Source: Mobula birostris
Taxonomy: Eukaryota
Assembly: GCF_030028105.1 (NCBI RefSeq)
Contig: NC_092377.1
Location: 126,622,242 to 126,686,241 of the forward strand
Length of the DNA stretch: 64,000 bases
Direction of reading: 5' to 3'
Part shown: positions 15,704 to 60,340 of the stretch, one piece after another
How the letters are laid out: each line of letters opens with the position of its first letter
Numbering within the stretch: the first letter of the stretch is position 1
Notes under the pieces: model-generated
The model's database searches: none
The model's input: the letters and a program-made list of their open reading frames with translations, nothing else
Told to the model about the DNA's origin: nothing
Program-made: the position numbers and the translations under genes

Positions 15704-15901
15704 CTGTCGAACATGATGGGTATACCTCAGTGCTGAGCTGCTCTCCCCAGATCCCCAAGTAACTTGGGCCAAAGTGCCTGTTCCTGTGCTATGCTGTTCT
15801 CAGTCTAGAGTCTCTCTCTAGTAGCACGGACAGAATATACATCGGAGTGGTTGCAGTCTGGAGTATCAGACCCTCCCTCTCCCTCTGCCATCGGCACTTA
15901 C

Positions 15902-16150
15902 CTGATGTGTTGTTGGTGATCTCACAGTAGACGGTGCGAGGGATAACCCGGGTGTAGTTCAGGGTGACTCTGTCAGCTTCCACCCTGGCCTGGCTGGCAA
16001 TCTGACAGTGGAGTTCGTTGCCTTTGTCTCTAGTACAGGTATCCTGGAACATTTCGAGCTTGTGAAGCCATAGGATCTGGGACCAGGATATTGTGCAGGG
16101 ACAGCTGAGGGAGATGGGTTTTCGAATGAACTTACAGAGGCCATGATCAC
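15902..16150 (-). CDS. Gene A exon 3 (83-aa, 6-Cys atypical Ig-like ectodomain)
   Basis: ctcctgacag acceptor, CAG|GTAAGT donor, 249 nt open, phase 1-1: GDHGLCKFIRKPISLSCPCTISWSQILWLHKLEMFQDTCTRDKGNELHCQIASQARVEADRVTLNYTRVIPRTVYCEITNNTS. N-glycosylation sequons NYT, NNT, NTS. Confidence 0.85.
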
Positions 16151-16467
16151 CTGTCAGGAGAGGAGTATCGTGGTCAGTGGGTTCAGAGGGAGATCATCCT
16201 CCCCTTCATAGAGTGGTTCCCTATACACTGCCCCATCACAGCCCCAGGGTCAGACAAAGAATGAATCTCTCCCTCTCCCTACTGCCCCATAATACCATAC
16301 TGGAACCAGATACAGGGTGAAACTCCCTCTGCAATGTCCTATTGCCCACTCCATGGGTCAGATGAAATGCAGTTCCCTGCACACTGTCTCGTCACAGGGA
16401 TTAGACCCAGAATGACTCTCACTCGACCCTGGACACAGAATCTCCCTCAATCCTACGTTGTACTTAC

Positions 16468-34380: not shown

Positions 34381-35208
34381 CTGCAAACACAGTGGGTACA
34401 CCTCAGAGCAGAGCTTCGATCCGCGCTTCTCCGAGGTCGGATGAGTCCTGTGGGGAGGAGCGGTGAGCTCGGTGCAAAGGGAGCAAGGGGTGAGCCTGTC
34501 CCATAGAGCTGGTCTGTCCCAGGACTCAGTGACACAATCACACACCATAGGAACATGCCTTTTGGGGACAAACCAACAGAGCCAGTCCCATTGGCTTGTA
34601 TTCATTCTGAAACCTTTCCCATCATGTACCTTTCTGAGTGACTTTTAAACGTTGTTATTGTAACCGGCAACAAACACTTCTGGCTGCTCATTCCAGGTAT
34701 GGACCTTCTGCCGGGTGAAAATGCTGCTTAAAACTCTGCATAACCTTGGAAGGTAGGCTATGTGTATTCACCCCATCCATGTCCCTCGTCATGATAGATA
34801 GATAAATAGAAGACAGCCACATCACTCCCCCACTGTCGAGATGTCCAACACTAGAGGTCAGACATTTAACCAAAATTGGTAAATTTGTAAAATTTTTACT
34901 GTTAATTTTTTTGGAATTCGCAGTGAGTGATGGATTGCTGGAATGTGCTACCAAGGGTGATGGTGGAAGCGGATACAATACAAGAGTTAAAATGTCCTTA
35001 GATAGACACATGAATGTATAGAGAACGGAGGGATATGGACGTTGTGTAGACAGAGGGGATTAGGTTAGTTAGGCATTTAATTAACAGTTCAAGGGGGAGC
35101 ACAGGTGGTCTTCCGTGGACATCCAGATGGGAGACAGGGGAAACGCAGATATTAAGCTATCGGAGTAGTGGGATCCCAGAGTATCGGACCCTCTCCCCCA
35201 GCACTTAC

Positions 35209-35460
35209 CTGATGTGCCGAAGCTGATTTCACAGTAGGTAGTGCGGGGGATAACCCAGCTGTAATTCAAGATAACATGGTCAGCATCCACTCTGGCCTGG
35301 CTGGCGTTTCGACAGCAGAGGCTGTTCCCCTCCCCCCTGGTGCAGACATCTCTGAAGGGTCCTCCAATGTCGTGAAGGTGCAGGCTCTGTGCAGCAGTCG
35401 GAAAACAGGGGCAGCTGAAGGAGCTGGTGTCTGGAGTGAAATGGCAGGTGCCATGCTGAC
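35209..35460 (-). CDS. Gene B exon 3 (84-aa Cys-rich atypical Ig-like ectodomain)
   Basis: ctctcgacag acceptor, CAG|GTAAGT donor, 252 nt open: GQHGTCHFTPDTSSFSCPCFPTAAQSLHLHDIGGPFRDVCTRGEGNSLCCRNASQARVDADHVILNYSWVIPRTTYCEISFGTS. Confidence 0.85.
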
Positions 35461-35529
35461 CTGTCGAGAGAAGTGTATTCCTGGTCAATAGGGTCGGGGG
35501 ATATCATCACCTTTACTTCCCCTCCTTCA

Positions 35530-40100: not shown

Positions 40101-43100
40101 TGGTGAACGCAGCAGGCCGGGCGGCATCTCTAGGAAGAGGTGCAGTCGGCGTTTCAGGCCGAGACCCTTCGTCAGGAATAACTGAAGGAAGAGTGAGTAA
40201 GGGATTTGAAAGTTGGAGGGGGAGGGATCCAAAATGATAGGAGAAGACAGGAAGGGGAGGGATAGAGCCAAGAGCTGGACAGGTGATAGGCAAAAGGGGA
40301 TACGAGAGGATCATGGGACAGGAGGTCCGGGAAGAAAGACAAGGGGGGGGACCCAGAGGATGGGCAAGGGGTATATTCAGAGGGACAGAGGGAGAATAAG
40401 GAGAGTGAGAGAAAGAATGTGTGCATAAAAATAAGTAACAGATGGGGTACGAGGGGGAGGTGGGGCATTAGCGGAAGTTAGAGAAGTCGATGTTCATGCC
40501 ATCAGGTTGGAGGCTACCCAGACGGAATATAAGGTGTTGTTCCTCCAACCTGAGTATGACTTCATCTTTACAGTAGAGGAGGCTGTGGATAGACATGTCA
40601 GAATGGAAATGGGATGTGGAATTAAAATGTGTGGCCACTGGGAGATCCTGCTTTCTCTGGCGGACAGAGCGTAGATGTTCAGCAAAGCGGTCTCCCAGTC
40701 TGCGTCGGGTCTCGCCAATATATAAAAGGCCACATCGGGAGCGCCGGACGCAGTATATCACCCCAGCCGACTCACAGGTGAAGTGTTGCCTCACCTGGAA
40801 GGACTGTTTGGGGCCCTGAATGGTGGTAAGGGAGGAAGTGTAAGGGCATGTGTAGCACTTGTTCCGCTTACACGGATAAAAGTGCCAGGAGGGAGATCAG
40901 TGGGGAGGGATGGGGGGGACGAATGGACAAGGGAGTTGCGTAGGGAGCGATCCCTGCGGAATGCAGAGAGAGGGGGGGAGGGAAAGATGTGCTTAGTGGT
41001 GGGATCCCGTTGGAGGTGGCGGAAGTTACGGAGAATAATATGTTGGACCCGGAGGCTGGTGGGGTGGTAGGTGAGGACCAGGGGAACCCTATTCCTAGTG
41101 GGGTGGCGGGAGGATGGAGTGAGAGCAGATGTACGTGAAATGGGGGAGATGCGTTTAAGAGCAGAGTTGATAGTGGAGGAAGGGAAGCCTCTTTCTTTAA
41201 AAAAGGAAGACATCTCCCTCGTCCTAGAATGAAAAGCCTCATCCTGAGAGCAGATGCGGCAGAGACGGAGGAATTGCGAGAAGTGGATGGCGTTTTTGCA
41301 AGAGACAGGGTGAGAAGAGGAATAGTCCAGATAGCTGTGAGAGTCAGTAGGCTTATAGTAGACATCAGTGGATAAGCTGTCTCCAGAGACAGAGACAGAA
41401 AGATCTAGAAAGGGGAGGGAGGTGTCAGAAATGGACCAGGTAAACTTGAGGGCAGGGTGAAAGTTGGAGGCAAAGTTAATAAAGTCAATGAGCTCTGCAT
41501 GCGTGCTGGAAGCAGCGCCAATGCAGTCGTCGATGTAGCGAAGGAAAAGTGGGGGACAGATACCAGAATAGGCACGGAACATAGATTGTTCCACAAAGCC
41601 AACAAAAAGGCAGGCATAGCTAGGACCCATACAGGTGCCTATAGCTACACCTTTAGTTTGGAGGAAGTGGGAGGAGCCAAAGGAGAAATTATTAAGAGTA
41701 AGGACTAATTCCGCTAGACGGAGCAGAGTGGTGGTAGAGGGGAACTGATTAGGTCTGGAATCCAAAAAGAAGCGTAAAGCTTTGAGACCTTCCTGATGGG
41801 GATAGAAGTATATAGGGACTGGACATCCATGGTGAAAATAAAGCAATGGGGGCCAGGGAACTTAAAATCATCGAAAAGTTTAAGAGTGTGAGAAGTGTCA
41901 CGAACATAGGTAGGAAGGGATTGAACAAGGGGGGATAAAACTGTGTCGAGGTAAGCAGAAACGGGTTCGGTGGGGCAGGAGCAAGCTGAGACAATAGGTC
42001 GGCCAGGACAGGCAGGTTTGTGGATCTTGGGTAGGAGGTAGAAACGGGAAGTGCGAGGTGTGGGAAGTATAAGGTTGGTAGCAGTGGATGGGAGATCCCC
42101 TGAGCGGATAAAGTCGGTGATGGTGTGGGAGACAATGGCCTGGTGCTCCTTAGTGGGGTCACGATCGAGGGGTAAATAAGAGGAGGTGTATCACGTACAT
42201 CTGCTCTCACTCCATCCTCCCACCACCCCACGAGGAATAGGGTTCCCCTGGGCCTCACCTACCACCCCACCAGCCTCCGGGTCCAACATATTATTCTCCA
42301 TAACTTCCGCCACCTCCAACGGGATCCCACCACTAAGCACATCTTTCCCTCCCCCCCTCTCTCTGCATTCCGCAGGGATCGCTCCCTACGCGACTCCCTT
42401 GTCCATTCGTCCCCCCCATCCCTCCCCACTGATCTCCCTCCTGGCACTTTTATCCGTGTAAGCGGAACAAGTGCTACACATGCCCTTACACTTCCTCCCT
42501 TACCACCATTCAGGGCCCCAGACAGTCCTTCCAGGTGAGGCAACACTTCACCTGTGAGTCGGCTGGGGTGATATACTGTGTCCGGTGCTCCCGATATGGC
42601 CTTTTATATATTGGCGAGACCCGACGCAGACTGGGAGACTGCTTTGCTGAACACCTACTCTCTGTCCGCCAGAGAAAGCAGGATCTCCCAGTGGCCACAC
42701 ATTTTAATTCCACATCCCATTCCCATTCTGACATGTCTATCCATGGTCTCCTCTACTGTAAAGATGAAGCCACACTCAGGTTGGAGGAACAACACCTTAT
42801 ATTCCGTCTGGGTAGCCTCCAACCTGATGGTATGAACATCGACTTCTCTAACTTCCGCTAATGCCCCACCTCCCCCTCATACCCCATCTGTTACTTATTT
42901 TTATACACATATCCTTTCTCTCTCTCTCCTTTTTCTCCCTCTGTCCCTCTGAATATAGCCCTTGCCCATCCTCTGGGTCCCCCCCCCGCCTTGCCTTTCT
43001 TCCCGGACCTCCTGTCCCATGATCCTCTTGTATCCCTTTTGCCAATCACCTGTCCAGCCTTTGGCTCCATCCCTCCCCCTCCTGTCTTCTCCTATCATTT

Positions 43101-43290
43101 TGGATCTCCCCCTCCCCCTCCAACTTTCAAATCCCTTACTCACTCTTCCTTCAGTTAGTCCTGACGAAGGGTCTCGGCCTGAAACGTCGACTGCACCTCT
43201 TCCTAGAGATGCTGCCTGGCCTGCTGCGTTCACCAGCAACTTTTATGTGTGTTTCTTGAATTTCCAGCATCTGCAGAATTCCTGTTGTTT
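40101..43290. mobile_element. Penelope-like element with ~1-kb inverted arms (40101-41137 minus; 42190-43235 plus)
   Basis: RT (TKGVAIGTCMGPSYACL, LRYIDD) and GIY-YIG (VIYCVRRSRCGLLYIGET) on the minus strand; the 3' part and pLTR are repeated inverted on the plus strand. Confidence 0.9.
43157..43192 (+). ncRNA. Minimal type I hammerhead ribozyme motif, intact core
   Basis: AGTC-CTGACGA-AGGGTCTCGGCCT-GAAAC-GTC-GACT; predicted cleavage after 43188. Confidence 0.7.
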
Positions 43291-43771
43291 GCTTTAATTT
43301 TTTCCCGCTTTTCTAATCGTTGCCATTAAATGCCTGAAGACGCACTTAACACATCCGGGACAGCTCCTCCCCCTCTGCCATCTGATTTCTAAATGGATGT
43401 TGCACTTTTATTATTTCTGTTTTTGCGCTGTTTCTTCATGTGACTATTTAATATACATGTATAAAGTTGCTTTAAATCATTTATTTTTCTATATGTTATC
43501 ATGTATGACATTGTACTTCTGCTGCTAAGTTAACAGATTTCACGACGTATGTGTGTGATTTTAAAACTGATCCTGAATCTGACTTTGTAAGTTTTCAATC
43601 ACTGACACATTTTACTGAGATTGCTTTACTTTACCTTCTTTACCACCCTATCAATCATCTGGAAAGTGGTCTCCATATTCCATTTCTCTGCCAGTACCTG
43701 CATCCCGCTCTATCCTTTGCCAGACTTATACACAATATTATTCACAATACCAGTGAGCTGTCTACAAACCA

Positions 43772-44057
43772 AAGTCAAAGTCCTGTCCCGAGCCTTTGTG
43801 GCTCATCAGCCCGGTGCTTATGCCAGTTTCTGTGGCGTGAAGCGACTGAGAGTACGAGACTCTCCACCCTGGATAGCACGCCAGTCTATCGCGAGGTTGA
43901 CCTCCAGCATTTTTTGCCGGTACCCATTGTTCAGCTGGGTACACTGGAGCATTGTGTGGTTAAGTGCCTTGCTTAAGGACACACGCTGCCTTGTCTGGGC
44001 TCGAACTCGTGACCTTCAGGTCGCTAGTCGAACACCCAAACCACACGGCCACACGCC
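43772..44057 (-). mobile_element. tRNA-derived SINE with 8-bp TSD
   Basis: tRNA-like head (gtggtttggg...gagttcgagccc) and ccttaagcaaggcactt body. TSD acaaacca at 43764-43771 and 44058-44065; empty paralogous site near 20830. Confidence 0.75.
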
Positions 44058-44204
44058 ACAAACCACTCAGCTATATTCTCATCCAAGTCATTGCTATTAT
44101 AACCAACAGTGATCCAGAGAGATCCCTGCGGAATACCAGTACACATGGGTCTCCCGCCTCTACTCTGACTTCTATGAAACCAAATGGCCAATTCACTGTG
44201 GATC

Positions 44205-47200
44205 CCATAAGACCATAAGACAAAGGAGCAGAAGTTGGCCATTCGGCCCATCGAGTCTGCTCCGCCATTTTATCATGAGCTGATCCATTCTCCCATTTAG
44301 TCCCACTCCCTCGCCTTGTCACCATAACCTTTGATGCCCTGGCTACTCAGATACCTATCAATCTCTGCCTTAAATACACCCAATGACTTGGCCTCCACTG
44401 CTGCCCGTGGCAACAAATTCCACAGATTCACCACCCTCTGGCTAAAAAAATTTCTTTGCATTTCTGTTCTGAATGGGCGCGCTTCAATCCTTAAGTCATG
44501 CTCTCTCGTACTAGACTCCCTCATCATGGGAAACAACTTTGCCACATCCACTCTGTCCATGCCTTTCAACATTCGAAATGTTTCTATAAGGTCTCCCCTC
44601 ATTCTTCGAAACTCCAAGGAATACAGTTCAAGAGAGGACAAATGTTCCTCATATGTTAACTCTCTCATTCCCGGAATCATTCTAGTGAATCTTCTCTGTA
44701 CCCTCTCCAAAGTCAGCACATCCTTTCTTAAATAAGGAGACCAAAACTGCCCACAGTACTCCAAGTGAGGTCTCACCAGTGCCTTATAGAGCCTCAACAT
44801 CACATCCCTGCTCCTATACTCTATTCCTCTAGAAATGAATGCCAACATTGCATTCGCCTTCTTCACTACCGACTCAACCTGGAGGTTAACTTTAAGGGTA
44901 TCCTGTACAAGGACTCCCAAGTCCCGTTGCATCTCAGAACTTTGAATTCTTTCCCCATTTAAATAATAGTCTGCCCGTTTATTTCTTCTGCCAAAGTGCA
45001 TAACCATACACTTTGCAACATTGTACTTCATTTGCCGCTTCTTTGCCCATTCTTCCAATCTATCCAAGTCTCTCTGCAGACTCTCCATTTCCTCAGCACT
45101 ACCGGCCCCTCCACCTATCTTCGTATCGTCCGCAAACTTAGCCACAAAGCCATTGATGTAGGACGTAAAAAGAAGCGGCCCCAACACTGATCCCTGTGGA
45201 AAACCACTGGCAACTGGCAGCCAACCAGAATAGGATCCCTTTATTCCCACTCTCTGTTTCCTGCCAATCAGCCAACGCTCTATCCACGTATGTAACTTTC
45301 CCGTAATTCCATGGGCTCTTATCTTGTTAAGTAGCCTCAGGTGTGGCACCTTGTCAAAGGCCTCCTGAAAATCCAAATATACAGCATCCACTGCATCTCC
45401 CTTGTCTAGCCTGCTGGTAACTTCCTCAAAAAATTGTAATAAGTTTGTCAGGCAGGATTTTCCTTTAAGGAATCCATGCTTGCTAAGTTCTGCCTATCTT
45501 GTCAAATGCCTCCAGGTACTCTGTAACCTCATCCTTGATAATCGAATCCAACAACCTCCCAACCACCGATGTCAAGCTAACAGGTCTGTAATTTCCCTTT
45601 TGCTGCCTTGCCGCCGCCTTAAATAACGGAGTGACATTTGCAATCTTCCAGTCCTCCGGAACCATGCCAGAATCTATCGACTTTTGAAAGATCATTGCTA
45701 ATGCCTGTGCAATCTCCACAGCTACTTCCTTCAGAACACGAGGGTGCATTCCATCTGGTCCGGGTGATTTATCTACCTTTAGACTATTCAGCTTCCTGAG
45801 TACTTCCTCCGTCGTAATTGTGACTGCGCACACTTCTCTTCCCTGCCACCCTTGAGCGTCCAGTATACTGCTGATGTCTTCCGCAGTGAAGGCTGATGCA
45901 AAATACTTGTTCAGTTCCTCTGCCATCTCCTTATCTCCCATTACAATTTCTCCAGCGTAATTTTCTATCAGTTCTATATCTACTCTCACCTGTCTTTTAC
46001 TCTTTACATACTTGAAAAAGCTTTTAGTATCCTCTTTGATATTATTTGCTAGCTTCCTTTCATAGTTAATCTTTTCTCTCTTAATGACCTTCTTAGTTTC
46101 CTTTTGTAAGGTTTTAAATACTTCCCAATCCTCTGTCTTCCCACTAATTTTTGCTTCCTTGTATGCCCTCTCCTTTGCTTTAACTTTGGCTTTGACTTCT
46201 CTTGTCAACCACAGTTGCATCCTTTTTCCATTCAAAAATGTCTTCTTTTCTGGAATATACCTGTCTTGCATCTTCCTCACTTCTTGCATAAACTCCAGCC
46301 ACTGCTGCTCTGCCATCTTTCCAGCCAGTGTCCCTTTCCAGTCAACTTTGGCCAGTTCCTCTCTCATGCCACTGTAATTTCCTTTGCTCCACTGAAATAC
46401 CGACACATCAGATTTCGGCTTCTCTTTTTCAAATGTCACAGCGAACTCAATCATGTTATGATCACTGTCTCCGAAGGGTTCCTTCACCTCAATCTCTCTA
46501 ATCACCTCTGGTTCATTGCACAATACCAAATCCAGTACAGCCGATCCCCTAGTGGGCTCAACAACAAGCTGTTCTAAAAAGACATCTTGCAGACATTCTA
46601 CAAATTCTCTCTCTTGAGATCCAGTGCCGACCTGATTTTCCCAATCCACTCGCATGTTAAAATCCCCCGCAATTATCGTAACACTGCCCTTCTGACAAGC
46701 CTTTTCTATTTCCTGTTGTAATTTGTAGTCCACATCCCAGCAGCTGTTTGGAGGCCTATAAATAACTGCCATCAGGGTCCTTTTACCCCTGCTATTTCTT
46801 AGCTCAACCCATAAAGATTCTGCACCTTCTGATCCTATATCACCTCTTTCTAATGATTTAATATCATTTCTTACCAATAAAGCCACACCTCCCCCTCTGC
46901 CTACCTTCCTATCCTTCCAATACACCGTGTATCCTTGGACGTTCAGCTCCCAGAGACATGCATCCTTTAGCCACGTCTCAGTGATGGTCACAATATCATA
47001 CCTGCCAATCTGTAGCTGTACGACAAGATCATCCACCTTATTCCTTATGCTGCGTGCATTTAAGTATAACACCTTAAGACCAGTATTTGGTACTTTTCGA
47101 TTTGATTTCACTGCAACTTTATTGCACTGCAACTCATCCCAATGGCAACAAATTTGCCCCATCACCTGCCTGTCTTTCCTGACATCTTTACTGCTCACTA

Positions 47201-47760
47201 TCTTAGATTTATTTCTGTTTTCCCCTTCCTCCGCTCTATCATTCCGATTCCCAGCCCCCTGCCAAATTAGTTTAAACTCTCCCTAACAGCTCTATTAAAC
47301 TTTCCCGCCAGGATATTGGTCCCTTCAGGTTCAGGTGTAACCTGTCCTTTTTGAACAGGTCATGCTTCCCCCAGAAGAGATCCCAATTATCCAAGAATCT
47401 GAAGCCCTGCCCCCTGCACCAGTCTCTCAGCCACGCATTCATCTGCCTGATCCTACTATTCTTGCCCTCGTTAGCACGTGGCACAGGTAGCAATCCCGAG
47501 ATTACTACCCTGGAGGTCCTGCTTCTCAGCTTCCTTCCTAACTCCTGGAAATCTCTCTTCAGGACCTCCTCCTTTGTCCTATCTATGTCATTGGTACCAA
47601 CATGTACCAAGACAACTGGCTGCTCACCCTCCCCCTTCAGAATATTCAGGACCCGATCCGAGACATCCCATACCCTGGCACCTGTGAGGCAACACACCAT
47701 GCGGGTATCTCTATCAGGCTCACAGGATCTCCTGTCCGTTCCCCTGACTATGGAATCCCC
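44205..47760 (-). mobile_element. Near full-length CR1 LINE (ORF1 SGNH-esterase part, ORF2 endonuclease plus RT, frameshifted)
   Basis: VHVGTNDI esterase motif (47272-47700), YLNARSIRNK endonuclease, VAKFADDTKIGG RT, (cttatg)n tail near 44205. Confidence 0.93.
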
Positions 47761-51949: not shown

Positions 51950-52900
51950 GTTGCGTGTCAGAGGACTCTCACATCTCCGGGCTGTTCGCAGGGACACACA
52001 AGGAGACGGACATCAATTGTAGCCGGCAGATCATCAACTCGGTGAAAGGCGCCTTTGGTCCGCCCGACCTCATTGGTCATCGAGATGTCCGTGGATGGGA
52101 GCTGCCGAATGGCGACAAGACACCGTGCTGATGGAGGCGCTGAAGCCGGGTTCAGGCTCCGCAGGGCTGGATGAGGAAGCGCCACAGTGTAGTGTTCCTT
52201 CACTACTGGAGAGGGAGAGGCCGGGTTGGGTGAGGAAGCTCCTTAATTACTGTAGCAGTGTACATGATTGATAACGTGGTGTTATGGTGTTAAGGAATGT
52301 AATCGAACACGAATGAAAGCATTGACTACCAATTTAAGAACGAAAGGCGCTTGTTCTTGTTTCTTTAAAATTATGAATAAAGATATTTTTCAAGTATAAA
52401 AATGTTGCAAAACCATTGGGAATTCTTCTAAGCCAACACCTCTCACCACAAATCCATCGGGCAGTGGTCTGCGCGGAACTTTCTGCAGACACTGCGGGAC
52501 AGCGGCCGTGGGGTGAATCGTTGAGCAAACGGCAGAACGCCGCATCCCCAAATCTCAGTAACAAGCAGAAAGACATCGCTTGGCTGGCGGTGAAAGTATC
52601 CCTCCCGGTAGGAACCTTCCTCTATCATTACCTTCGGGACGGCTGTGATCGGGAACTCACGGTCACCACCTCTCAGCAGACCGTGGAGACGGATGCAAGA
52701 GTCTGTGTACCGGTTCATCCCAATCAGCTGTGAAATGAAGGATTCTCTGAGAAACAGACTATTTCCCAGGTCACACACAGACGGGCATCTGGAAGATCAT
52801 CGGGTCGATGAAGGACGTCCTTTGGTCTGTCGGAAATTTGTTGGTCTCTCCTGACAGTGAGATGTCGGTGGGAGAAAGCTGGTTACTGGCACAGTCCAGG
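51950..52900 (+). mobile_element. Two tandem Tx1/L1-like 3' fragments
   Basis: QNAASPNLSNKQKDIAWLAVKVSLPV motif; the block catcaactcggtgaa...ctttggtc is present twice; aataaa and A-rich end near 52380. Confidence 0.6.
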
Positions 52901-52984
52901 CCGCAAGAGGAGGTACTTCAGGAAGTGTCCTGGGTCCGCCAGCAGTGATGGGGCTTTTTCTCCGCTGCCGCTGTCGCTGTCGCC

Positions 52985-53139
52985 TCAGAGTCCGCACTTT
53001 ACGGAACGACCGCCAGGGGGCGCTCGGTGCGCGGGTTCGCTGTTGCTCTTTGGGAGCCGGTACACGGTGGTCAGGACTAGGAGAGCGAGCGCCTTCAGGA
53101 CGAGCAGGATGTAAAAAGGCAGTGGCTCCCGAGGAGAAC
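52985..53139 (-). CDS. Gene C exon 4 (short stalk, TM with Lys, tail without Tyr motif)
   Basis: atttactctcag acceptor, phase 1: GSPREPLPFYILLVLKALALLVLTTVYRLPKSNSEPAHRAPPGGRSVKCGL-stop. Confidence 0.85.
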
Positions 53140-53379
53140 CTGAGAGTAAATCGGAGTTCAGAGTGAGACGGTTTACCGAGGCGAGCTAGGGATGGGTTGT
53201 ATTCTGAGGGTTCAGGGGTTTATATATTGAATAACATTGCTGCGAGTGGGTTACAGGGTGGGATGTAATCCAAGCGTTCTGGGTGAGGGGGTTATATATG
53301 AAATAACAGAACTGGACCTGCGATCCAATCCCAGGAGGAATCAGGGAAGTGGCGGTGAAAGGTGATACCGGCGATTTAC

Positions 53380-53739
53380 CTCGTACCAGGACCACGGTCC
53401 CGTTCCCTCGGAGCAGCAGCTGCCGGTCGGGAAGATGAACGGACGCCAGGCAGTGATAGGTGTTGGAGTGGCTCGGTCGGAGGTGCCGAAGTTGGAGGGA
53501 GAGTCCCGTGCCGATCCCACTCTCAGGGAGAGCATCTTGCTGCCGGGATCCCTCGGGGGGCGGATAGACGACACGTTCCTCTCCCTCCTCCTCTGTCCCG
53601 CCGACCACCCAATAGGGGTAGATGATCACCCGGGACTCCGTCAGCCCCAGAACTTCGCAGTGCAGCGTCACGTTGGAGCCACTCGGGACCTCCAACCTCC
53701 GAGGCCACTGGGACACGGAGAGGGTGGCGAGCGAGATGT
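53380..53739 (-). CDS. Gene C exon 3 (V-J-type Ig domain 2, CD28H/TMIGD2- and NKp30-like)
   Basis: 360 nt phase 1-1, GAG|GTAAAT donor. SVSQWP, VTLHC, YW, LSLQL, YHC and J-like GNGTVVLV motifs. Confidence 0.92.
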
Positions 53740-53945
53740 CTGTAACACATGGAGAGAGAGAGAGGGAGAGCGAGAACGGTGAGCGAGCGTCTGTAACACA
53801 TGGAGAGAGAGAGAGGGAGAGTAGTGAGGGAGCGTCTGCAACACAGAAAGGGAGGGAGTGGTGTGAGGGAGCGTCTGTAACACAAGGAGGGAGAGAGTAG
53901 TGAGGGAGGGTCTGAAACACAGGGAGGGAGAGAGTCTGTACAGAG
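53740..53945 (-). repeat. ~40-50-bp tandem repeat of the splice-acceptor unit upstream of V2 (related array at 55352-55625 upstream of V1)
   Basis: Each unit is a pyrimidine tract plus tgtgtt(a/g)cag followed by acgctc. Confidence 0.85.
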
Positions 53946-54991
53946 AAAGAGGATGGGGGGGCAGAGATTAAACGTGGAGTGATATCAAACTGTAAGGAAA
54001 GAGTTAAACATGATTCGTCCTTGGTAAGTGCTAAAATAAAAAGGAAGTCTGCCAGACAACATGGTGTTAACCCGGAGCGGAACTGATTTGAGAAAGTTGA
54101 ATGAGTACAAGTCTCCAGTCTGGAGAGTAGATCATGATGAATACAAGTTTGTGTCAGGAAGGTGAGGCCTTTGGCCAGGTACCGAACAGTGACCCAGCAG
54201 GGAGAGTTCTGTGGTACGAGTTATGTTCGAGTTTTAAAGGGATACTGAAGGGTGTAGGTACGGGTAAATCTTTCTGCAAGTGGGGAGAATTTTCCATCAG
54301 AGCACGTTAGGACCAGTGATAACGGTAAGAGTTCGGGAAGATAGACACAGTTACGTCCAGAGAGAGAGAGAGAGTTTTCCATCCGGCATTTGCAGATCAG
54401 CTCGTTCAGTGGACGGGAAGTGTTTGTTTTTCGCTACATCATTAACCCTTCTTTTTCCTTTTTGCATTGCATGGTTACATAGTTCTAATAAAACAATTTA
54501 TTGCAGTTTAACACGTGTACAGGTGTCCTCTTTGTTTGCAAATACAGACCCGAGTGCTTATTGCTAACGCAGGAAAGAACACAACGAATTTTTAAACAAT
54601 TATCGTTAGGCAAGCACAACCCGAAATCGGGCAAACTCTGCCTAACACCTCCATTTTCCCCATGTCCCTCCTCCCATTCATCCCGTTTCCATGACATTTC
54701 CCTCTCGTCCTCAGGCGTTCCCTGCTCCCTCTCTCCCAACCCAAGTCCCATTTCCACATCCCACTCACAACTCCACCATTCCCCACTCGCACAATTTGTA
54801 CACAGACACACACACAAATAGATACACTGATATACTCCCCAAGATCGGGTTACAGATGGAATCTTCCCCAGCGCTTCGACGGAAATGTATCTATGGAAAA
54901 ACTGCACCGAATATGGGATCAGCTCCCAGGAATGATGCGGGAATCTGGGGGCAGCTTGCAGGGAACGAGGGCAGTGGGACCGGAGACTCAC

Positions 54992-55351
54992 CTCGTACCA
55001 GGAGCACGCTCCCGTTCCCTCGGAGCAGCAGCCGCCGGTCGGGAAGGTGAACGGACGCCAGGCAGTGGTAGGTGTTGGAGTGGCTCGGTCGGAGGTGCCG
55101 GAGTTGGAGGGAGAGTCCCGTGGCGATCTCACTCTCAGGTAGGGCGGCTTCCTGCCGGGATTCCTCTGGGGCCGGGTAGACGACACGTTCCTCTTCTCCC
55201 TCCTCCGTCCCGCCGATCACCCAATAGGGGTAGATTATTAACCGGGGCTCCGTCAGCCCCAGAACCTCGCAGTGCAGCGTCACATTGGAGCCACTCGGGA
55301 CCTCCAACCTCCGAGGCCACTGGGACACGTAGAGGGTGGCGAGGGAGCTGT
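54992..55351 (-). CDS. Gene C exon 2 (V-J-type Ig domain 1)
   Basis: 360 nt phase 1-1, GAG|GTGAGT donor; 16 of 120 residues differ from domain 2 by manual alignment. Confidence 0.92.
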
Positions 55352-55990
55352 CTGTAACACAGTGAGAGAGAATAGTGAGGGAGCGTCCGTAACACATAGA
55401 GGGAAGGAGAGGGAGCGGTGGATGAGAGAGTTCATGTAACACAGTGAGGGAGGGGGAGTGGCGAGTCTGTAATACCTGGAGAGAGAGTAGTTAGGGAGCG
55501 TCTGTAATACAAGGAAGGAGGGAGTGGAGTGAGGGAGTGTCTGTAACACAGGGAGGGAGAGAGTAGTGAGGGAGCGTCTGTAACACAGGGAGGGAGGGAG
55601 TAGTGAAGGACCGTCTGTACACAGGAAGAGGATGGGAGGGGCAGAGATTAAATGTGGAGTGATATCAAATTGTAAGGAAAGAGTTAAACATGATTCGTCT
55701 TTGGTAAGTGCTAAAATAAAAAGGAAGTCTGCCAGACAACATGGTGTTAACCCGGAGTGGAACTGATTTGAGAAAGTTGAATGAGTACAAGTCTCCAGTC
55801 TGGAGAGTAGATCATGATGAATACAAGTTTGTGTCGGGAAGGCGAGGCCTTTGTCCAGGTACCAAACAGTGATCTATCAGGGAGAGTTCTGGGGTAAGAG
55901 TTATGTCAGAGTTTTAAAGGGATATTGTAAGGGTGTAAGTACGGGTAAGTCTTTGTTTAAGTGGGGAGAATTTTCCATCAGACCACGTTA

Positions 55991-58900
55991 AACTAGATTT
56001 GCAGGTGGAGGGGAATCAGAGTGTTAGAGCAGATAGTGAAGTGGAGGAGGATAAAGGTCATGTGAGAACAGCAAGTATAGTGCATGGAGTAAAGCCAGTC
56101 TAACATATAAACATGCTTTGAGGAAAGAGAAACAGAATAAAGGATGTAAAGGTAGTAAGGTAGAAGGGCTAAAGTGTGTGTACTGCAATGCAAGAAGCGT
56201 CAGGAGCAAAGGTGATGAACTGAGAGCTTGGAAACATGCATGGAATTTTGATGTCGTGGCCATTACAGAGACTTGGCTGGCACCACGGCAGGAATGGATA
56301 CACAATATTCCTGGATTTCAGTGCTTTCAAAGAGATAGAGAGGGGGGAAAAGGGGAGGAGGGGTGGCATTATTGGTCAGGGATACTATTACAGCTACAGA
56401 AAGGGTGGGCAATGTCGCAGAATCCTCTTTTGAGTCAGTATGGGTGGAAGTCAGGAACAGGAAGGGAGCAGTTACTCTACTGGGGGTATTCTATAGGCCC
56501 CCTGGTAGCAGCAGAGATACCGAGGAGCAGATTGGGAGGCAGATTTTGGAAAGTTGCAAAAATAACAGGGTTGTTATCATGGATGACTTTAATTTCCCTA
56601 ATATTGATTGGCACCTGATTAGTTCCATTGGTTTAGACGAGGCAGAGTTTGTTCAGTGTGTCCAGGACAGATTCCTGTCACAGTATGTTGACAGACCGAC
56701 TGGGGGGGATGCCATACTAGATCTAGTATTAGGTAAAGAACCGGATCAGGTCACAGATCTCTCAGCGGGTGAGCATATGGGGGACAATGACCATCGCTCC
56801 CTGGTCTTTAACATTATCATGGAAAAGGATAGAATCTGAGCGGACAGGAAAATCTTTAATTGGCGAAGGGCAAATTATGAGGCTATAAGGCTAGAACTTG
56901 CGGGTGTGAATTGGGATGATGTTTTTGCAGGGAAATGTACTATGGACATGTGGTCAATGTTTAGAGATCTCTTGCAGGATGTTAGGGATAAATTTGTCCC
57001 GGTGAGGAAGATAAAGAATGGTAGGATGAAGGAACCAATGGTGACAAGTGAGGTGGAAAATCTAGTCAGGTGGAAGAAGGTAGCATACATGAGATTTAGG
57101 AAGCAAGGATCAGATGGATCTATTGAGGAATATAGGGTAGCAAGAAAGGAGCTTAAGAGGGGCTGAGCAGAGCAAGAAGGGGGCATGAGAAGGCCTTGGT
57201 GAGCAGGGTAAAGGAAAACCCCAAGGCATTCTTCAGTAATTTGAAGAACAAAAGGATGACAGGAGTGAAAATAGGGCCGATTAGAGATAAAGGTGGGAAG
57301 ATGTGCCTGGAGGCTGTGGAAATGAGCGAGGTCCTCAATGAATACTTCTCTTCGATATTCACTAATGAGAGGGAACTTGATGATGGTGAGGACAATATGA
57401 GTGATGTTGATGTTCTGGAGCATGTTGATGTTAAGGGAGAAGAGGTGTTGGAGTTGTTAAAATATATTAGGATGGGTAAGTCCCCGGTGCCTGACGGAAT
57501 ATTCCCCAGGCTGCTCCACGAGGCGAGAGAAGAGAATGCTGAGCCTCGGGCTAGGATCTTTATGTCCTCATTGTCCACGGCAATGGTACCGGAGGATTGG
57601 AGGGAGGCGAATGTTGTCCCCTTGTTTAAAAAAGGTAATTGGGATGGTCCGGGTAATTATAGACCAGTGAGCCTTACGTCTGTGGTGGGAAAGCTGTTGG
57701 AAAAGATTCTTAGGGATAGGATCTATGGGCATTTAGAGAATCATGGTCTGATCAGGGACAGTCATCATGGCTTTGTGAAGGGAAGATCGTGTCTAGCAAA
57801 CCCGATGGAGTCCTTTGAGGAGGTGACCAGGCATATAGATGAGGGTAGTGCAGTGGATGTGATCTATATGGATTTTAGTAAGGTATTTGACAAGGTTCCA
57901 CACGGTAGGCTTATTCAGAAAGTCAGAAGGCATGGGATCCAGGGAAGTTTGGCCAGGTGGATTCAGAATTGGCTTGCCTGCAGAAAGCAGAGGGTCGTGG
58001 TGGAGGGAGTACATTCGGATTGGAGGGTTGTGACTAGTGGTGTCCCACAAGGATCTGTTCTGGGACCTCTACTTTTCGTGATTTTTATTAACGACCTGGT
58101 TGTGGAGGTAGAAGGGTGGGTTGGCAAGTTTGCAGATGACACAAAGGTTGGTAGTATTGTAGATAGTGTAGAGGTTTCTCGAAGATTGCGGAGAGACATT
58201 GATAGGATGCAGAAGTGGGCTGAGAAGTGGCAGATGGAGTTCAACCCGGAGAAGTGCGAGGTGGTACACTTTGGAAGTACAAACTCCGAGGCAGAAAACA
58301 AAGTAAATGGCAGGATACTTGGAAGTGTGGAGGAGCAGAGGGATCGGGGGGTACATGTCCACAGATCCCTGAAAGTTGCCTCACAGGTAGATAGGGTAGT
58401 TAAGAAAGCGTATGGGGTGTTAGCTTTCATAAGTTGAGGGATAGAGTTTAAGAGTCGCGATGTAATGATGCAGCTCTATAAAACTCTGGTTAGGCCATAC
58501 TTGGAGTACTGTGTCCAGTTCTGGTCACCTTACTATAGGAAGGATGTGGAAGCATTGGAAAGGTTACAGAGGAGATTTACCAGGATGCTGCCTGGTTTAG
58601 AAAGTATGCATTATGATCAGAGATTAAGGGAGTTAGGGCTTTACTCTCTAGAGAGAAGGAGGATGAGAGGAGACATGATAGAGGTGTACAAGATATTAAG
58701 AGGAATAGATAGAGTGGACAGCCAGCGCATCTTACCCAGCGCACCACTGCTCAATACAAGAGGACATGGCTTTAAGGTAAGGGGTGGGAAGTTCAAGGGG
58801 GATATTAGAGGAAGTTTTTTTATTCAGAGAGTGGTTGGTGTGTGGAATGCACTGCCTGAGTCAGTGGTGGAGGCAGATACACTAGTGAACTTTAAGAGAC

Positions 58901-59031
58901 TGCTAGACAGGTACATGGAGGAATTTAAGGTGGGGAGTTATATGGGAAGCAGGCTTTAAGGGTCGGCACAACATTGTGGGCCGAAGGGCCTGTACTGTGC
59001 TGTACTGTTCTATGTTCTATGTTCTGTGTTA
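55991..59031 (+). mobile_element. 5'-truncated CR1 LINE in gene C intron 1
   Basis: YCNARSVRSK, VFYRPP, HGFVKGRSCL and KFADDTKVG motifs, (gttctat)n tail. The empty site is visible in the duplicated intron at ~54301-54320. Confidence 0.93.
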
Positions 59032-59396
59032 CGACCAGTGATAATGAGAAGAGTTGGGGAAGATAGAGACAAGTGTGGTGAGGGAGCGTCTGTATTTCCG
59101 GTGAGGGAGTGGAGCGGGGCAGAGAGTGACCCGGATGCAGCGTCCAAAACAGCTCGAAGTCAGGCAGCTTCTGCTCAACATCAACCAGCACCTCTCCCCA
59201 CGATCCATGACCTTTCCTGAATCCATGACATTCCCCTGTCAACAACACACACCCCTTCTCCTTCTCCACTACATTGACAGCCTAACTCTTTCACCCCCAA
59301 ACGACGGAAATTCTTCCCAACACTCCGACCCTTCATGCATACTATCACTCTATGGGGAGCTGGCCCCACAGACACAGACTCTTTCTGTCATTTTCT

Positions 59397-59464
<68 letters not shown>

Positions 59465-59506
59465 TACATACATACACGTGTCCCGAGCAGTATGAGAGGT
59501 TCTTAC

Positions 59507-59552
59507 CCAATAGCAGGAGGAGCAAGATCAGTTTTCGAAGCTGCGCCCTCAT
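59507..59552 (-). CDS. Gene C leader exon (MRAQLRKLILLLLLL)
   Basis: gcgATGA start, G|GTAAGA phase-1 donor joining in frame to DSSLA-TLYVSQ; acceptor ccccctcag at 59582. Confidence 0.85.
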
Positions 59553-59599
59553 CGCCCGAAGTATTTTCAATTAACACATCTCTGAGGGGGCAAAAAGAA

Positions 59600-60340
59600 A
59601 TATCTTAGCATAGTTTCGCCGGGCCGAAGGGACATAATACCTTGCTGTAGTGAAAATAATGATCTGTATGGACATGAATTTCTGAACAAATTTCCGTGTC
59701 TTCGGTGATATACCAAATCTCATCAAACTCCTAATGAAATATATACACCGCCGCATCTTTGTAATTGCATCGATATGCTGGGCCCAGTCTAGATCCTCAG
59801 AGATATTGACACCCAGGAACTTGAAATTGTTTACTCTTTCTTCTTCTGATCCCTCTGTGATGACTGATGTGTGTCCCCTTGTCTTACCCTTTCTGAAGTC
59901 TTTCTGAGATTGAGTGCAAGGTTGTTGCTGTGACACGACCCAACAAGCTGATACACCTCGCTCCTGTACGCCCTCTCGTCACCATCTGCGATTCTGCCAA
60001 CAATAGTTGTACCATCTGCAAATTTATAGGTGGCATTTGAGCTGTGAGGGTGTAGAGAGCATAGAGCAGTGGGCTAAGGACACGTCCCAGAGGGGCGCCG
60101 GTGTTGTCAGCGAGGTGGAAATGTTATTTCCAATTCAGACAGAGAGATTGTGGTCTCCAGTTCAGTAAGTCGAGGATCCAGTTGCAGAGGGAGGTATAGA
60201 GGCCCTGGTTCTGCAGCTTGTTGATCAGAACTGCAGGACAGATTGTGTTAATTGTTGAGCTGTAGTCAATAATCAGCATCCTGTCACAGGTATTTGTATT
60301 GTCCACGTCATCCACGGCCGTGTGAAGAGTCTTTCAGATC
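59600..60340 (-). mobile_element. Rex/Babar-like LINE fragment
   Basis: IDYSSTINTICP...LCNWILD and ERVNNFKFLGVNISEDL motifs. Confidence 0.8.

Follow-up and report, generated by a model that had tools for sequence, protein, structure and literature searches.

A transcribed germline V-J gene of the giant manta ray most likely encodes an activating-type leukocyte receptor of an unnamed shark-and-ray family

What kind of receptor does a ray make from two variable (V) exons that already carry their J-like ends in the germline and from one transmembrane (TM) exon with a lysine? The question is raised by a gene in a 64,000-nucleotide stretch of the giant manta ray (Mobula birostris) genome, contig NC_092377.1 of assembly GCF_030028105.1, positions 126,622,242 to 126,686,241 of the forward strand (the window). 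The gene lies on the minus strand between window positions 59552 and 52985. Of the living vertebrates whose immunity is based on antibodies, sharks and rays are the oldest, and their non-rearranging V-J genes have been studied as relics of an antigen-receptor precursor (PMC12227049, PMC10751288). The original prediction, made from the sequence alone, was a receptor related to CD28H (TMIGD2) or NKp30 (NCR3), with a recently duplicated V exon and with diversification by splicing. In this study, its observations were confirmed and its interpretation was only partly supported. The locus is an intact, expressed gene for a type I membrane glycoprotein, which is already in RefSeq. We believe, with a probability of roughly 70%, that the product is an adaptor-coupled, activating-type receptor belonging to an unnamed elasmobranch family of genes with V-exon arrays.

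The gene consists of four exons, as read from the sequence and its translation. The leader exon (59552-59507, 46 nt) runs from ATG to a final G before a GT donor, ends in phase 1 and encodes the start codon and the signal peptide MRAQLRKLILLLLLL. The V1 exon (55351-54992) and the V2 exon (53739-53380) are each 360 nt long and encode a 120-residue immunoglobulin V (IgV) domain of the V-J type, of which V2 is of the membrane-proximal type. V1 has the pair Cys28-Cys97, the YPYW core, YHC and RGNGS-VLLV, and both domains have the canonical cysteine pair, YPYW, YHC and a J-like RGNG(S/T)V motif. Both matched Pfam V-set (E = 1e-7 and 6e-8) and contain two N-x-S/T sites each. The last coding exon (53139-52985, 155 nt including the stop codon) encodes an 8-residue stalk, the TM helix PLPFYILLVLKALALLVLTTVY and a 24-residue tail. 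All exon junctions have AG acceptors and GT donors and are in phase 1. The V1V2 product of 306 aa and the V1-only or V2-only products of 186 aa are therefore all in frame. The 306-aa spliced model is letter-identical to the RefSeq proteins XP_072122252/53/54, annotated as "uncharacterized protein".

V and J are contiguous within one exon, and a rearranging V segment, which is followed by a recombination signal sequence (RSS), is not what was found here. No RSS heptamer with a 12- or 23-nt spacer and a nonamer was found in 52900-59600. The CACAGTG heptamers at 55358 and 55440 on the plus strand were considered as RSS candidates and rejected: no nonamer lies 12 or 23 nt away, and the heptamers are part of the repeated splice-site unit with TGTGTTACAG. 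Thus the exon structure, the reading phases, the germline-joined domains and the absence of an RSS all stood as originally predicted.

Transcript evidence came from the contigs of four public runs (X1 to X4) of one study, placed on 52300-55450. The contigs cover only exons and the 3' untranslated region (UTR), and the depth over introns is essentially nil. This exon-only coverage with spliced joints argues strongly that the runs behave as RNA. The covered part of the 3' UTR (52300-52984, minus strand) is seen in X1 record 1 and X3 record 15, and a 2476-nt contig runs past 52300, so that the 3' UTR is at least 0.7 kb long. The V2-TM junction (53380 to 53139) was present in X1, X2 and X3. The V1-V2 junction (54992 to 53739) was present in X1 record 5 and X3 record 17 with 0 mismatches and at a depth equal to that of the flanking exon contigs. 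The V1 exon is covered without mismatch and has joints with both the leader and V2; in each of the four runs (4/4), the loose end at its acceptor is leader sequence. Because the leader-V1, V1-V2 and V2-TM junctions are all present, both V exons are included in one mRNA. Transcription of only one V exon, which would have spoken against the original prediction, was not what the contigs contained.

It had also been proposed that the V exons are used alternatively, as V1-only, V2-only and V1V2 forms, to diversify ligand recognition. The phase 1-1 exons would permit all three forms, and minor isoforms could be missed in contigs, which drop rare variants. In one X4 contig, the TM exon is linked with the 3' end of a V exon that was placed on V1, with V2 skipped. 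However, the V part of this contig has 5 mismatches in 88 nt, and the mismatch at 55043 changes Pro104 to Thr and gives HLTDRR, the mark of V2 in the neighbouring paralog XP_072122256. With these paralog-type changes, V2 skipping was rejected, and the contig is better read as a junction of a paralog or of a recombinant allele. A leader-V2 junction was not found among the contigs of the four runs, and single-V isoforms were not seen in them either, with the reservation that rare forms are dropped. The depth of the V1-V2 junction in X1 and X3 and the retention of every V exon in all RefSeq models of the gene and its orthologs also argue against exon choice, which we consider unlikely. The contigs and all RefSeq models agree on the V1-V2 tandem, and diversification by choice of V exon was not borne out.

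The splice variation that was seen concerns linker length and intron retention. In the main 306-aa form, V1 and V2 are joined without a linker. Tandem Repeats Finder and an acceptor scan located an array of ~37-nt repeats upstream of each V exon, at 53740-53935 for V2 and at 55352-55625 for V1 (both minus strand). Every unit repeats the 3' splice site together with the opening bases of the exon, with TGTGTTACAG before the splice site and ACGCTCCCTCAC after it. Upstream of V2, the alternative acceptors 53790, 53835 and 53874 are open and in frame and add 17, 32 and 45 Ser/Pro/Leu-rich residues, respectively. Upstream of V1, there is no open in-frame extension, and the acceptor scan gave no usable extra acceptor. 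One X2 contig (depth 9, compared with ~50) joins the V1 donor to 20 nt at 53771-53790, the start of the 51-nt extension. This indicates that the form with a 17-residue linker is produced. Equivalent linkers of 13 and 36 residues occur in RefSeq isoforms of the red stingray gene. The repeated splice-site copies upstream of V2 would thus allow in-frame lengthening of the V1-V2 linker.

The features of the membrane anchor are those of a receptor that signals through an ITAM (immunoreceptor tyrosine-based activation motif) adaptor. The TM segment spans residues ~261-282 with Lys271 at its centre, and the 24-residue tail RLPKSNSEPAHRAPPGGRSVKCGL that follows contains no tyrosine and no signalling motif. 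Receptors with a TM lysine or arginine and a motif-less tail pair with aspartate-bearing ITAM adaptors, as do NKp44 with DAP12 and NKp30 with CD3zeta or FcRgamma, and DAP12-coupled receptors, NKp44 among them, have such a lysine at the centre of the TM segment (PMC6514059). The lysine is conserved in the cloudy catshark homolog. The TM lysine and short tail fit an activating-type receptor, and we believe that the gene product is most likely an activating-type leukocyte receptor. In this model, the V domains would bind a conserved, putative ligand, and the lysine and the aspartate in the TM segment of a DAP12- or FcR-gamma-type ITAM adaptor would form a pair, with the adaptor carrying the signal. 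We found no published papers on DAP12 in elasmobranchs.

The product could instead be a non-signalling surface or shed protein, acting in adhesion or as a decoy, with the TM lysine serving assembly or retention. X1 record 2 retains the V2-TM intron (depth 4, compared with 235). Such read-through of the V2 donor leads to a TM-less product, and RefSeq models the same for the Mobula hypostoma ortholog (isoform X1, 319 aa). Isoform X3 of that ortholog (277 aa) has a different hydrophobic tail, for which no convincing match was found in the window. The putative nature of the adaptor coupling also leaves room for this explanation. However, the TM-encoding form dominates the contigs, the retained-intron contig could be pre-mRNA, and the TM exon and the position of its lysine are conserved between rays and catshark, as is typical of adaptor-coupled receptors. 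Taken together, a shed or non-signalling protein seems improbable.

We then asked to which family the gene belongs. An exhaustive HMMER (phmmer) search of 1.8 billion representative proteins with V1 returned 20 matches at E <= 1e-3. The strong ones were a red stingray (Hemitrygon akajei) protein that combines three V domains with the same TM segment (E = 2e-195) and a 175-aa cloudy catshark (Scyliorhinus torazame, GCB59757) protein whose single V domain is followed by a TM segment with a lysine (E = 1e-13). Weak matches (2e-5 to 5e-4) were uncharacterized V or V-C1 proteins of sturgeon, gar, paddlefish and coelacanth, and the remaining matches were generic multi-Ig proteins. Word-indexed protein searches with V1 and with the catshark homolog returned nothing or the query only, a method that misses distant kin. 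Further members were obtained by a search with the stingray protein and by cluster look-ups.

The members found, beside XP_072122252 (identical to the window gene), are a second M. birostris gene, the neighbouring paralog XP_072122256; three adjacent genes of M. hypostoma, namely LOC134350233 (the ortholog, 96.7% identical), LOC134350234 and LOC134350235; XP_072911415 and XP_072911426 of H. akajei; LOC132385340 and XP_059813377 of Hypanus sabinus; and GCB59757 of S. torazame, with its single V domain and TM lysine. LOC134350234 has five V domains, the fifth of which is frameshifted, so that the frame of the TM exon is lost; this is either a paralog in decay or an error in the assembly or the gene model. 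The XP_059813377 model (1374 aa) consists of a leader, 11 V domains at 120-residue spacing and a TM segment with the lysine, and its automatic name, 'hemicentin-2-like', is misleading. The members share the leader MRAQLRKLILLLLL, the 120-residue V-J domains, a TM exon of the form EPLPxY..LK.. and a short tail. The window product has the same leader, V domains and TM exon and is 86-97% identical to the ray members. The number of V domains is one in the catshark, two to three in the mantas and stingrays, and 5 and 11 in gene models. When manta V2 with its TM segment was aligned with the catshark protein, the match ran end-to-end (38% identity, E = 3e-32), and the lysines coincided in their TM position. 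This end-to-end alignment with a single-V protein suggests that the ancestor was probably single-V and that the V exon was multiplied in rays. By sequence, the gene is a member of an unnamed shark-and-ray family of the form V(n)-TM(Lys), and membership in CD28H or NKp30 is unlikely. In published papers, we found no mention of the relatives' accessions and no name or function for any member.

The affiliation with CD28H or NKp30 deserves a closer look. In its strongest form, the gene would be a ray ortholog or co-ortholog of CD28H/TMIGD2 or NKp30/NCR3 and would bind a ray homolog of HHLA2 (B7H7) or B7H6. The structural comparisons are in its favour. The predicted structure of a single V domain has a predicted local distance difference test (pLDDT) score of 79. 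Foldseek against the Protein Data Bank (PDB) gave NKp30 (3noi) as the top match, at 25% identity. Against 550,129 Swiss-Prot models, a T-cell receptor (TCR) V-alpha domain ranked first, SIRP-alpha second, human TMIGD2 fourth and NCR3 sixth to eleventh, with E values of 3e-6 to 6e-6 and 23-25% identity for TMIGD2 and NCR3. A protein language-model search led to PD-1/CTLA-4-like V domains. The resemblance to TMIGD2 and NKp30 that had originally been noted is thus real in the fold rankings; it is generic, however, as the NKp30 and TMIGD2 fold scores tie with those of TCR V-alpha, SIRP, PD-1 and IgNAR.

The sequence evidence argues against such an affiliation. Neither TMIGD2, NCR3 nor any CD28 family member was among the 20 HMMER matches. 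NKp30 was absent from the 60 best PDB sequence matches. A profile search of PDB sequences was dominated by multi-V antibodies, and single-V receptors are not rankable in it. The accessions of the relatives were not in the supplements of a CD28-family survey (PMC11599192). According to that survey, CD28H has a single IgV domain with YxC[E/K/Q/N]xxx-E-I-P in the region of complementarity-determining region 3 (CDR3), a long tail with Y-x-N-x (GRB2/GADS), no TM charge and synteny with fsd1/stap2 (PMC11599192). Here, two V exons are present in the mRNA (the catshark relative has one), the tail has neither YxNx nor any tyrosine, and Lys271 lies within the TM segment. The CDR3 region reads YHC-LASV-HLP, with a nonpolar residue (Leu) after the Cys and His for Glu, and that of the catshark homolog reads YIC-MVSA-HRN. 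H-L-P stands at the same offset after YxC as the E-I-P of CD28H (PMC11599192), a point in favour, but EIP itself is absent and the catshark relative is without LP. NKp30 has one V domain and a TM arginine that couples it to CD3zeta/FcRgamma (PMC6514059), and it is MHC-linked (PMC6514059, PMC10751288). The window gene resembles NKp30 in its non-rearranging V-J type IgV encoded in one exon, with GNG(S/T) and no RSS, and a basic TM residue is common to both (PMC6514059), but this residue is a central lysine and not the arginine of NKp30. Membership in CD28H or NKp30 was therefore not sustained, and we regard orthology to either as quite unlikely.

The two V exons were compared to learn how the tandem arose. 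The comparison gave 31 differences in 360 nt and 16 in 120 residues, and 11 of the 16 residue differences lie within residues 36-77 (Fisher p = 0.004), exactly as first counted. A blastn self-comparison placed copy 2 of the duplicated unit at 53367-54349 (minus strand), where the V2 exon is flanked by intron sequence of 13 nt downstream and ~610 nt upstream, and copy 1, with V1, at 54979-55990 plus 59028-59071 (minus strand). The unit is thus ~1.0 kb long including the 360-nt exon, and its upstream intron part is ~0.6-0.7 kb, not the ~0.9 kb given originally. Divergence between the units is 6.5% in a clean intron block and 8.6% in the exon.

The V copies differ mainly in the CDR1-end, C-C', C'-C'' and D regions. 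The ratio of nonsynonymous to synonymous divergence (dN/dS) between V1 and V2 is 0.37, and the frameworks are near-invariant across rays, which together point to purifying selection. Positive selection on residues 36-77 was considered and ruled out: dN is 0.126 and dS 0.37 in this stretch (dN/dS 0.34), dS in the flanks is 0.08-0.12, and both dN and dS are 3-4 times their flank values. As the synonymous changes cluster in the same central stretch, the cluster of differences is, on this substitution pattern, a mosaic in which the ends were homogenised or the middle was exchanged, and not a footprint of positive selection. The CDR3 motif HLPDR is near-invariant in rays. A conserved framework with a near-invariant CDR3 suggests a conserved ligand rather than pathogen-driven diversification.

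The duplication had been called recent, which did not hold. In trees of all V domains, the V2-type domains of Mobula (from the gene, its M. hypostoma ortholog and the paralogs) form one clade (support 82/89), and V2 of the window gene pairs with the orthologous M. hypostoma V2 (96/79). The pair of V1 and its orthologous V1 is weaker, with an ultrafast bootstrap of 85 and an SH-like approximate likelihood ratio test value of 0. The M. hypostoma ortholog has 13 of the 16 V1/V2 differences in identical form. The shared differences and the V2 clade indicate that the duplication and most of the divergence predate the Mobula split and the local multiplication of the gene; the V1 and V2 types were already distinct in the M. 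hypostoma ortholog and the paralogs. Stingray V domains group by species, having either expanded independently or evolved in concert. It appears that V-exon arrays grow and shrink through unequal recombination, accompanied by partial homogenisation.

One further proposal takes the arrays themselves as the point: rays would have a germline V-J receptor system on arrays of 1-11 V exons, in which splicing switches the geometry and valency of the binding site through a linker of 0, 17, 32 or 45 residues. Given antibody-like V domains, separate chains would be made to pair with each other, as in a diabody, when the linker has zero length, and a long linker would permit pairing within a chain, as in a single-chain variable fragment. 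Low-level single-V isoforms could add diversity. The two-domain AlphaFold model of V1-V2 (pLDDT 34, predicted TM-score 0.29, shallow alignment) was uninformative on V1-V2 packing. We think that such a system is very unlikely.

Several points weigh against the adaptor-coupled receptor that we favour. The adaptor, the ligand, the cell type and the tissue are all putative. The sequencing runs are coded, and their status as RNA is the guess of a software tool. Automatic prediction is the source of the gene models with 5 and 11 V domains, and the five-V model ends in a frameshift. The distant bony-fish relatives (gar, paddlefish, coelacanth) are without a TM charge, so that the TM lysine is to be taken as an elasmobranch feature.

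Small immune-type genes apart, the window consists mostly of repeat debris. Intron 1 contains a long interspersed nuclear element (LINE) retrotransposon of ~3.0 kb at 55991-59027 on the plus strand, antisense to the gene and within the V1 copy of the duplicated intron, with a Pfam RVT_1 match (E = 2.7e-33) at 57157-58434. Between the V1 and V2 units, homology breaks off at 55990 and sets in again at 59028. Since the LINE lies within an otherwise duplicated intron, it was inserted after the duplication of the V exon or was lost from the other copy. A microsatellite, (TC)14 with (CA)n, is located at 59400-59477, ~30 nt downstream of the leader splice donor. Apart from the gene and transposon debris, the window contains only two related open exons, at 15792-16193 and 35084-35503 (both minus strand), each of which encodes a Cys-rich ectodomain with a shared ..YCEI..TSGKC.. 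motif. Pfam gave no match for these exons or for other open reading frames (ORFs). They are probably two copies of another orphan receptor family adjoining the gene. Long transposon-type ORFs occupy 40794-47282, including 45486-47282 (599 aa) and 44300-45493 (398 aa, reverse-transcriptase-like).

As the gene was already in RefSeq, the gain is one of classification and transcript evidence and not of discovery. The locus is a transcribed example of an unnamed family in which V-J domains stand on a lysine-bearing anchor and the number of V exons ranges from 1 to 11 across species and paralogs. The tempting link to the checkpoint pairs CD28H-HHLA2 and NKp30-B7H6 is unsupported and is thereby removed. 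The gene product is an undescribed receptor of an already known type.

A comparison with known systems shows where this type lies. With CD28H, the gene shares an IgV domain with a GxG J-like motif and [IL]-P at the same offset after YxC, an offset at which the catshark relative lacks even the LP. CD28H/TMIGD2 and CD28HL differ from it in their single V domain, E-I-P, long YxNx tail and uncharged TM segment, as opposed to two V domains, H-L-P and a lysine here. With NKp30, it shares a non-rearranging V-J IgV, a basic TM residue and a short tail, which in NKp30 goes with signalling through ITAM adaptors (PMC6514059); NKp30 differs in its one V domain, TM arginine and MHC linkage, and no significant sequence match between it and the window gene was found. 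Among the elasmobranch relatives, the stingray isoforms differ in their 13- or 36-residue linkers, which are Ser/Pro-rich. From the DAP12-coupled receptors of the immunoglobulin superfamily, the gene is set apart by the lack of detectable orthology, by an ectodomain of tandem, near-identical V-J domains and by an adaptor pairing that is putative here. It nevertheless resembles NKp44, SIRP-beta, TREM, Siglec-15 and the activating novel immune-type receptors (NITRs) of teleosts in its central TM lysine, its motif-less short tail and its V-type ectodomain, and SIRP V domains are among the best structural matches to its own V domain.

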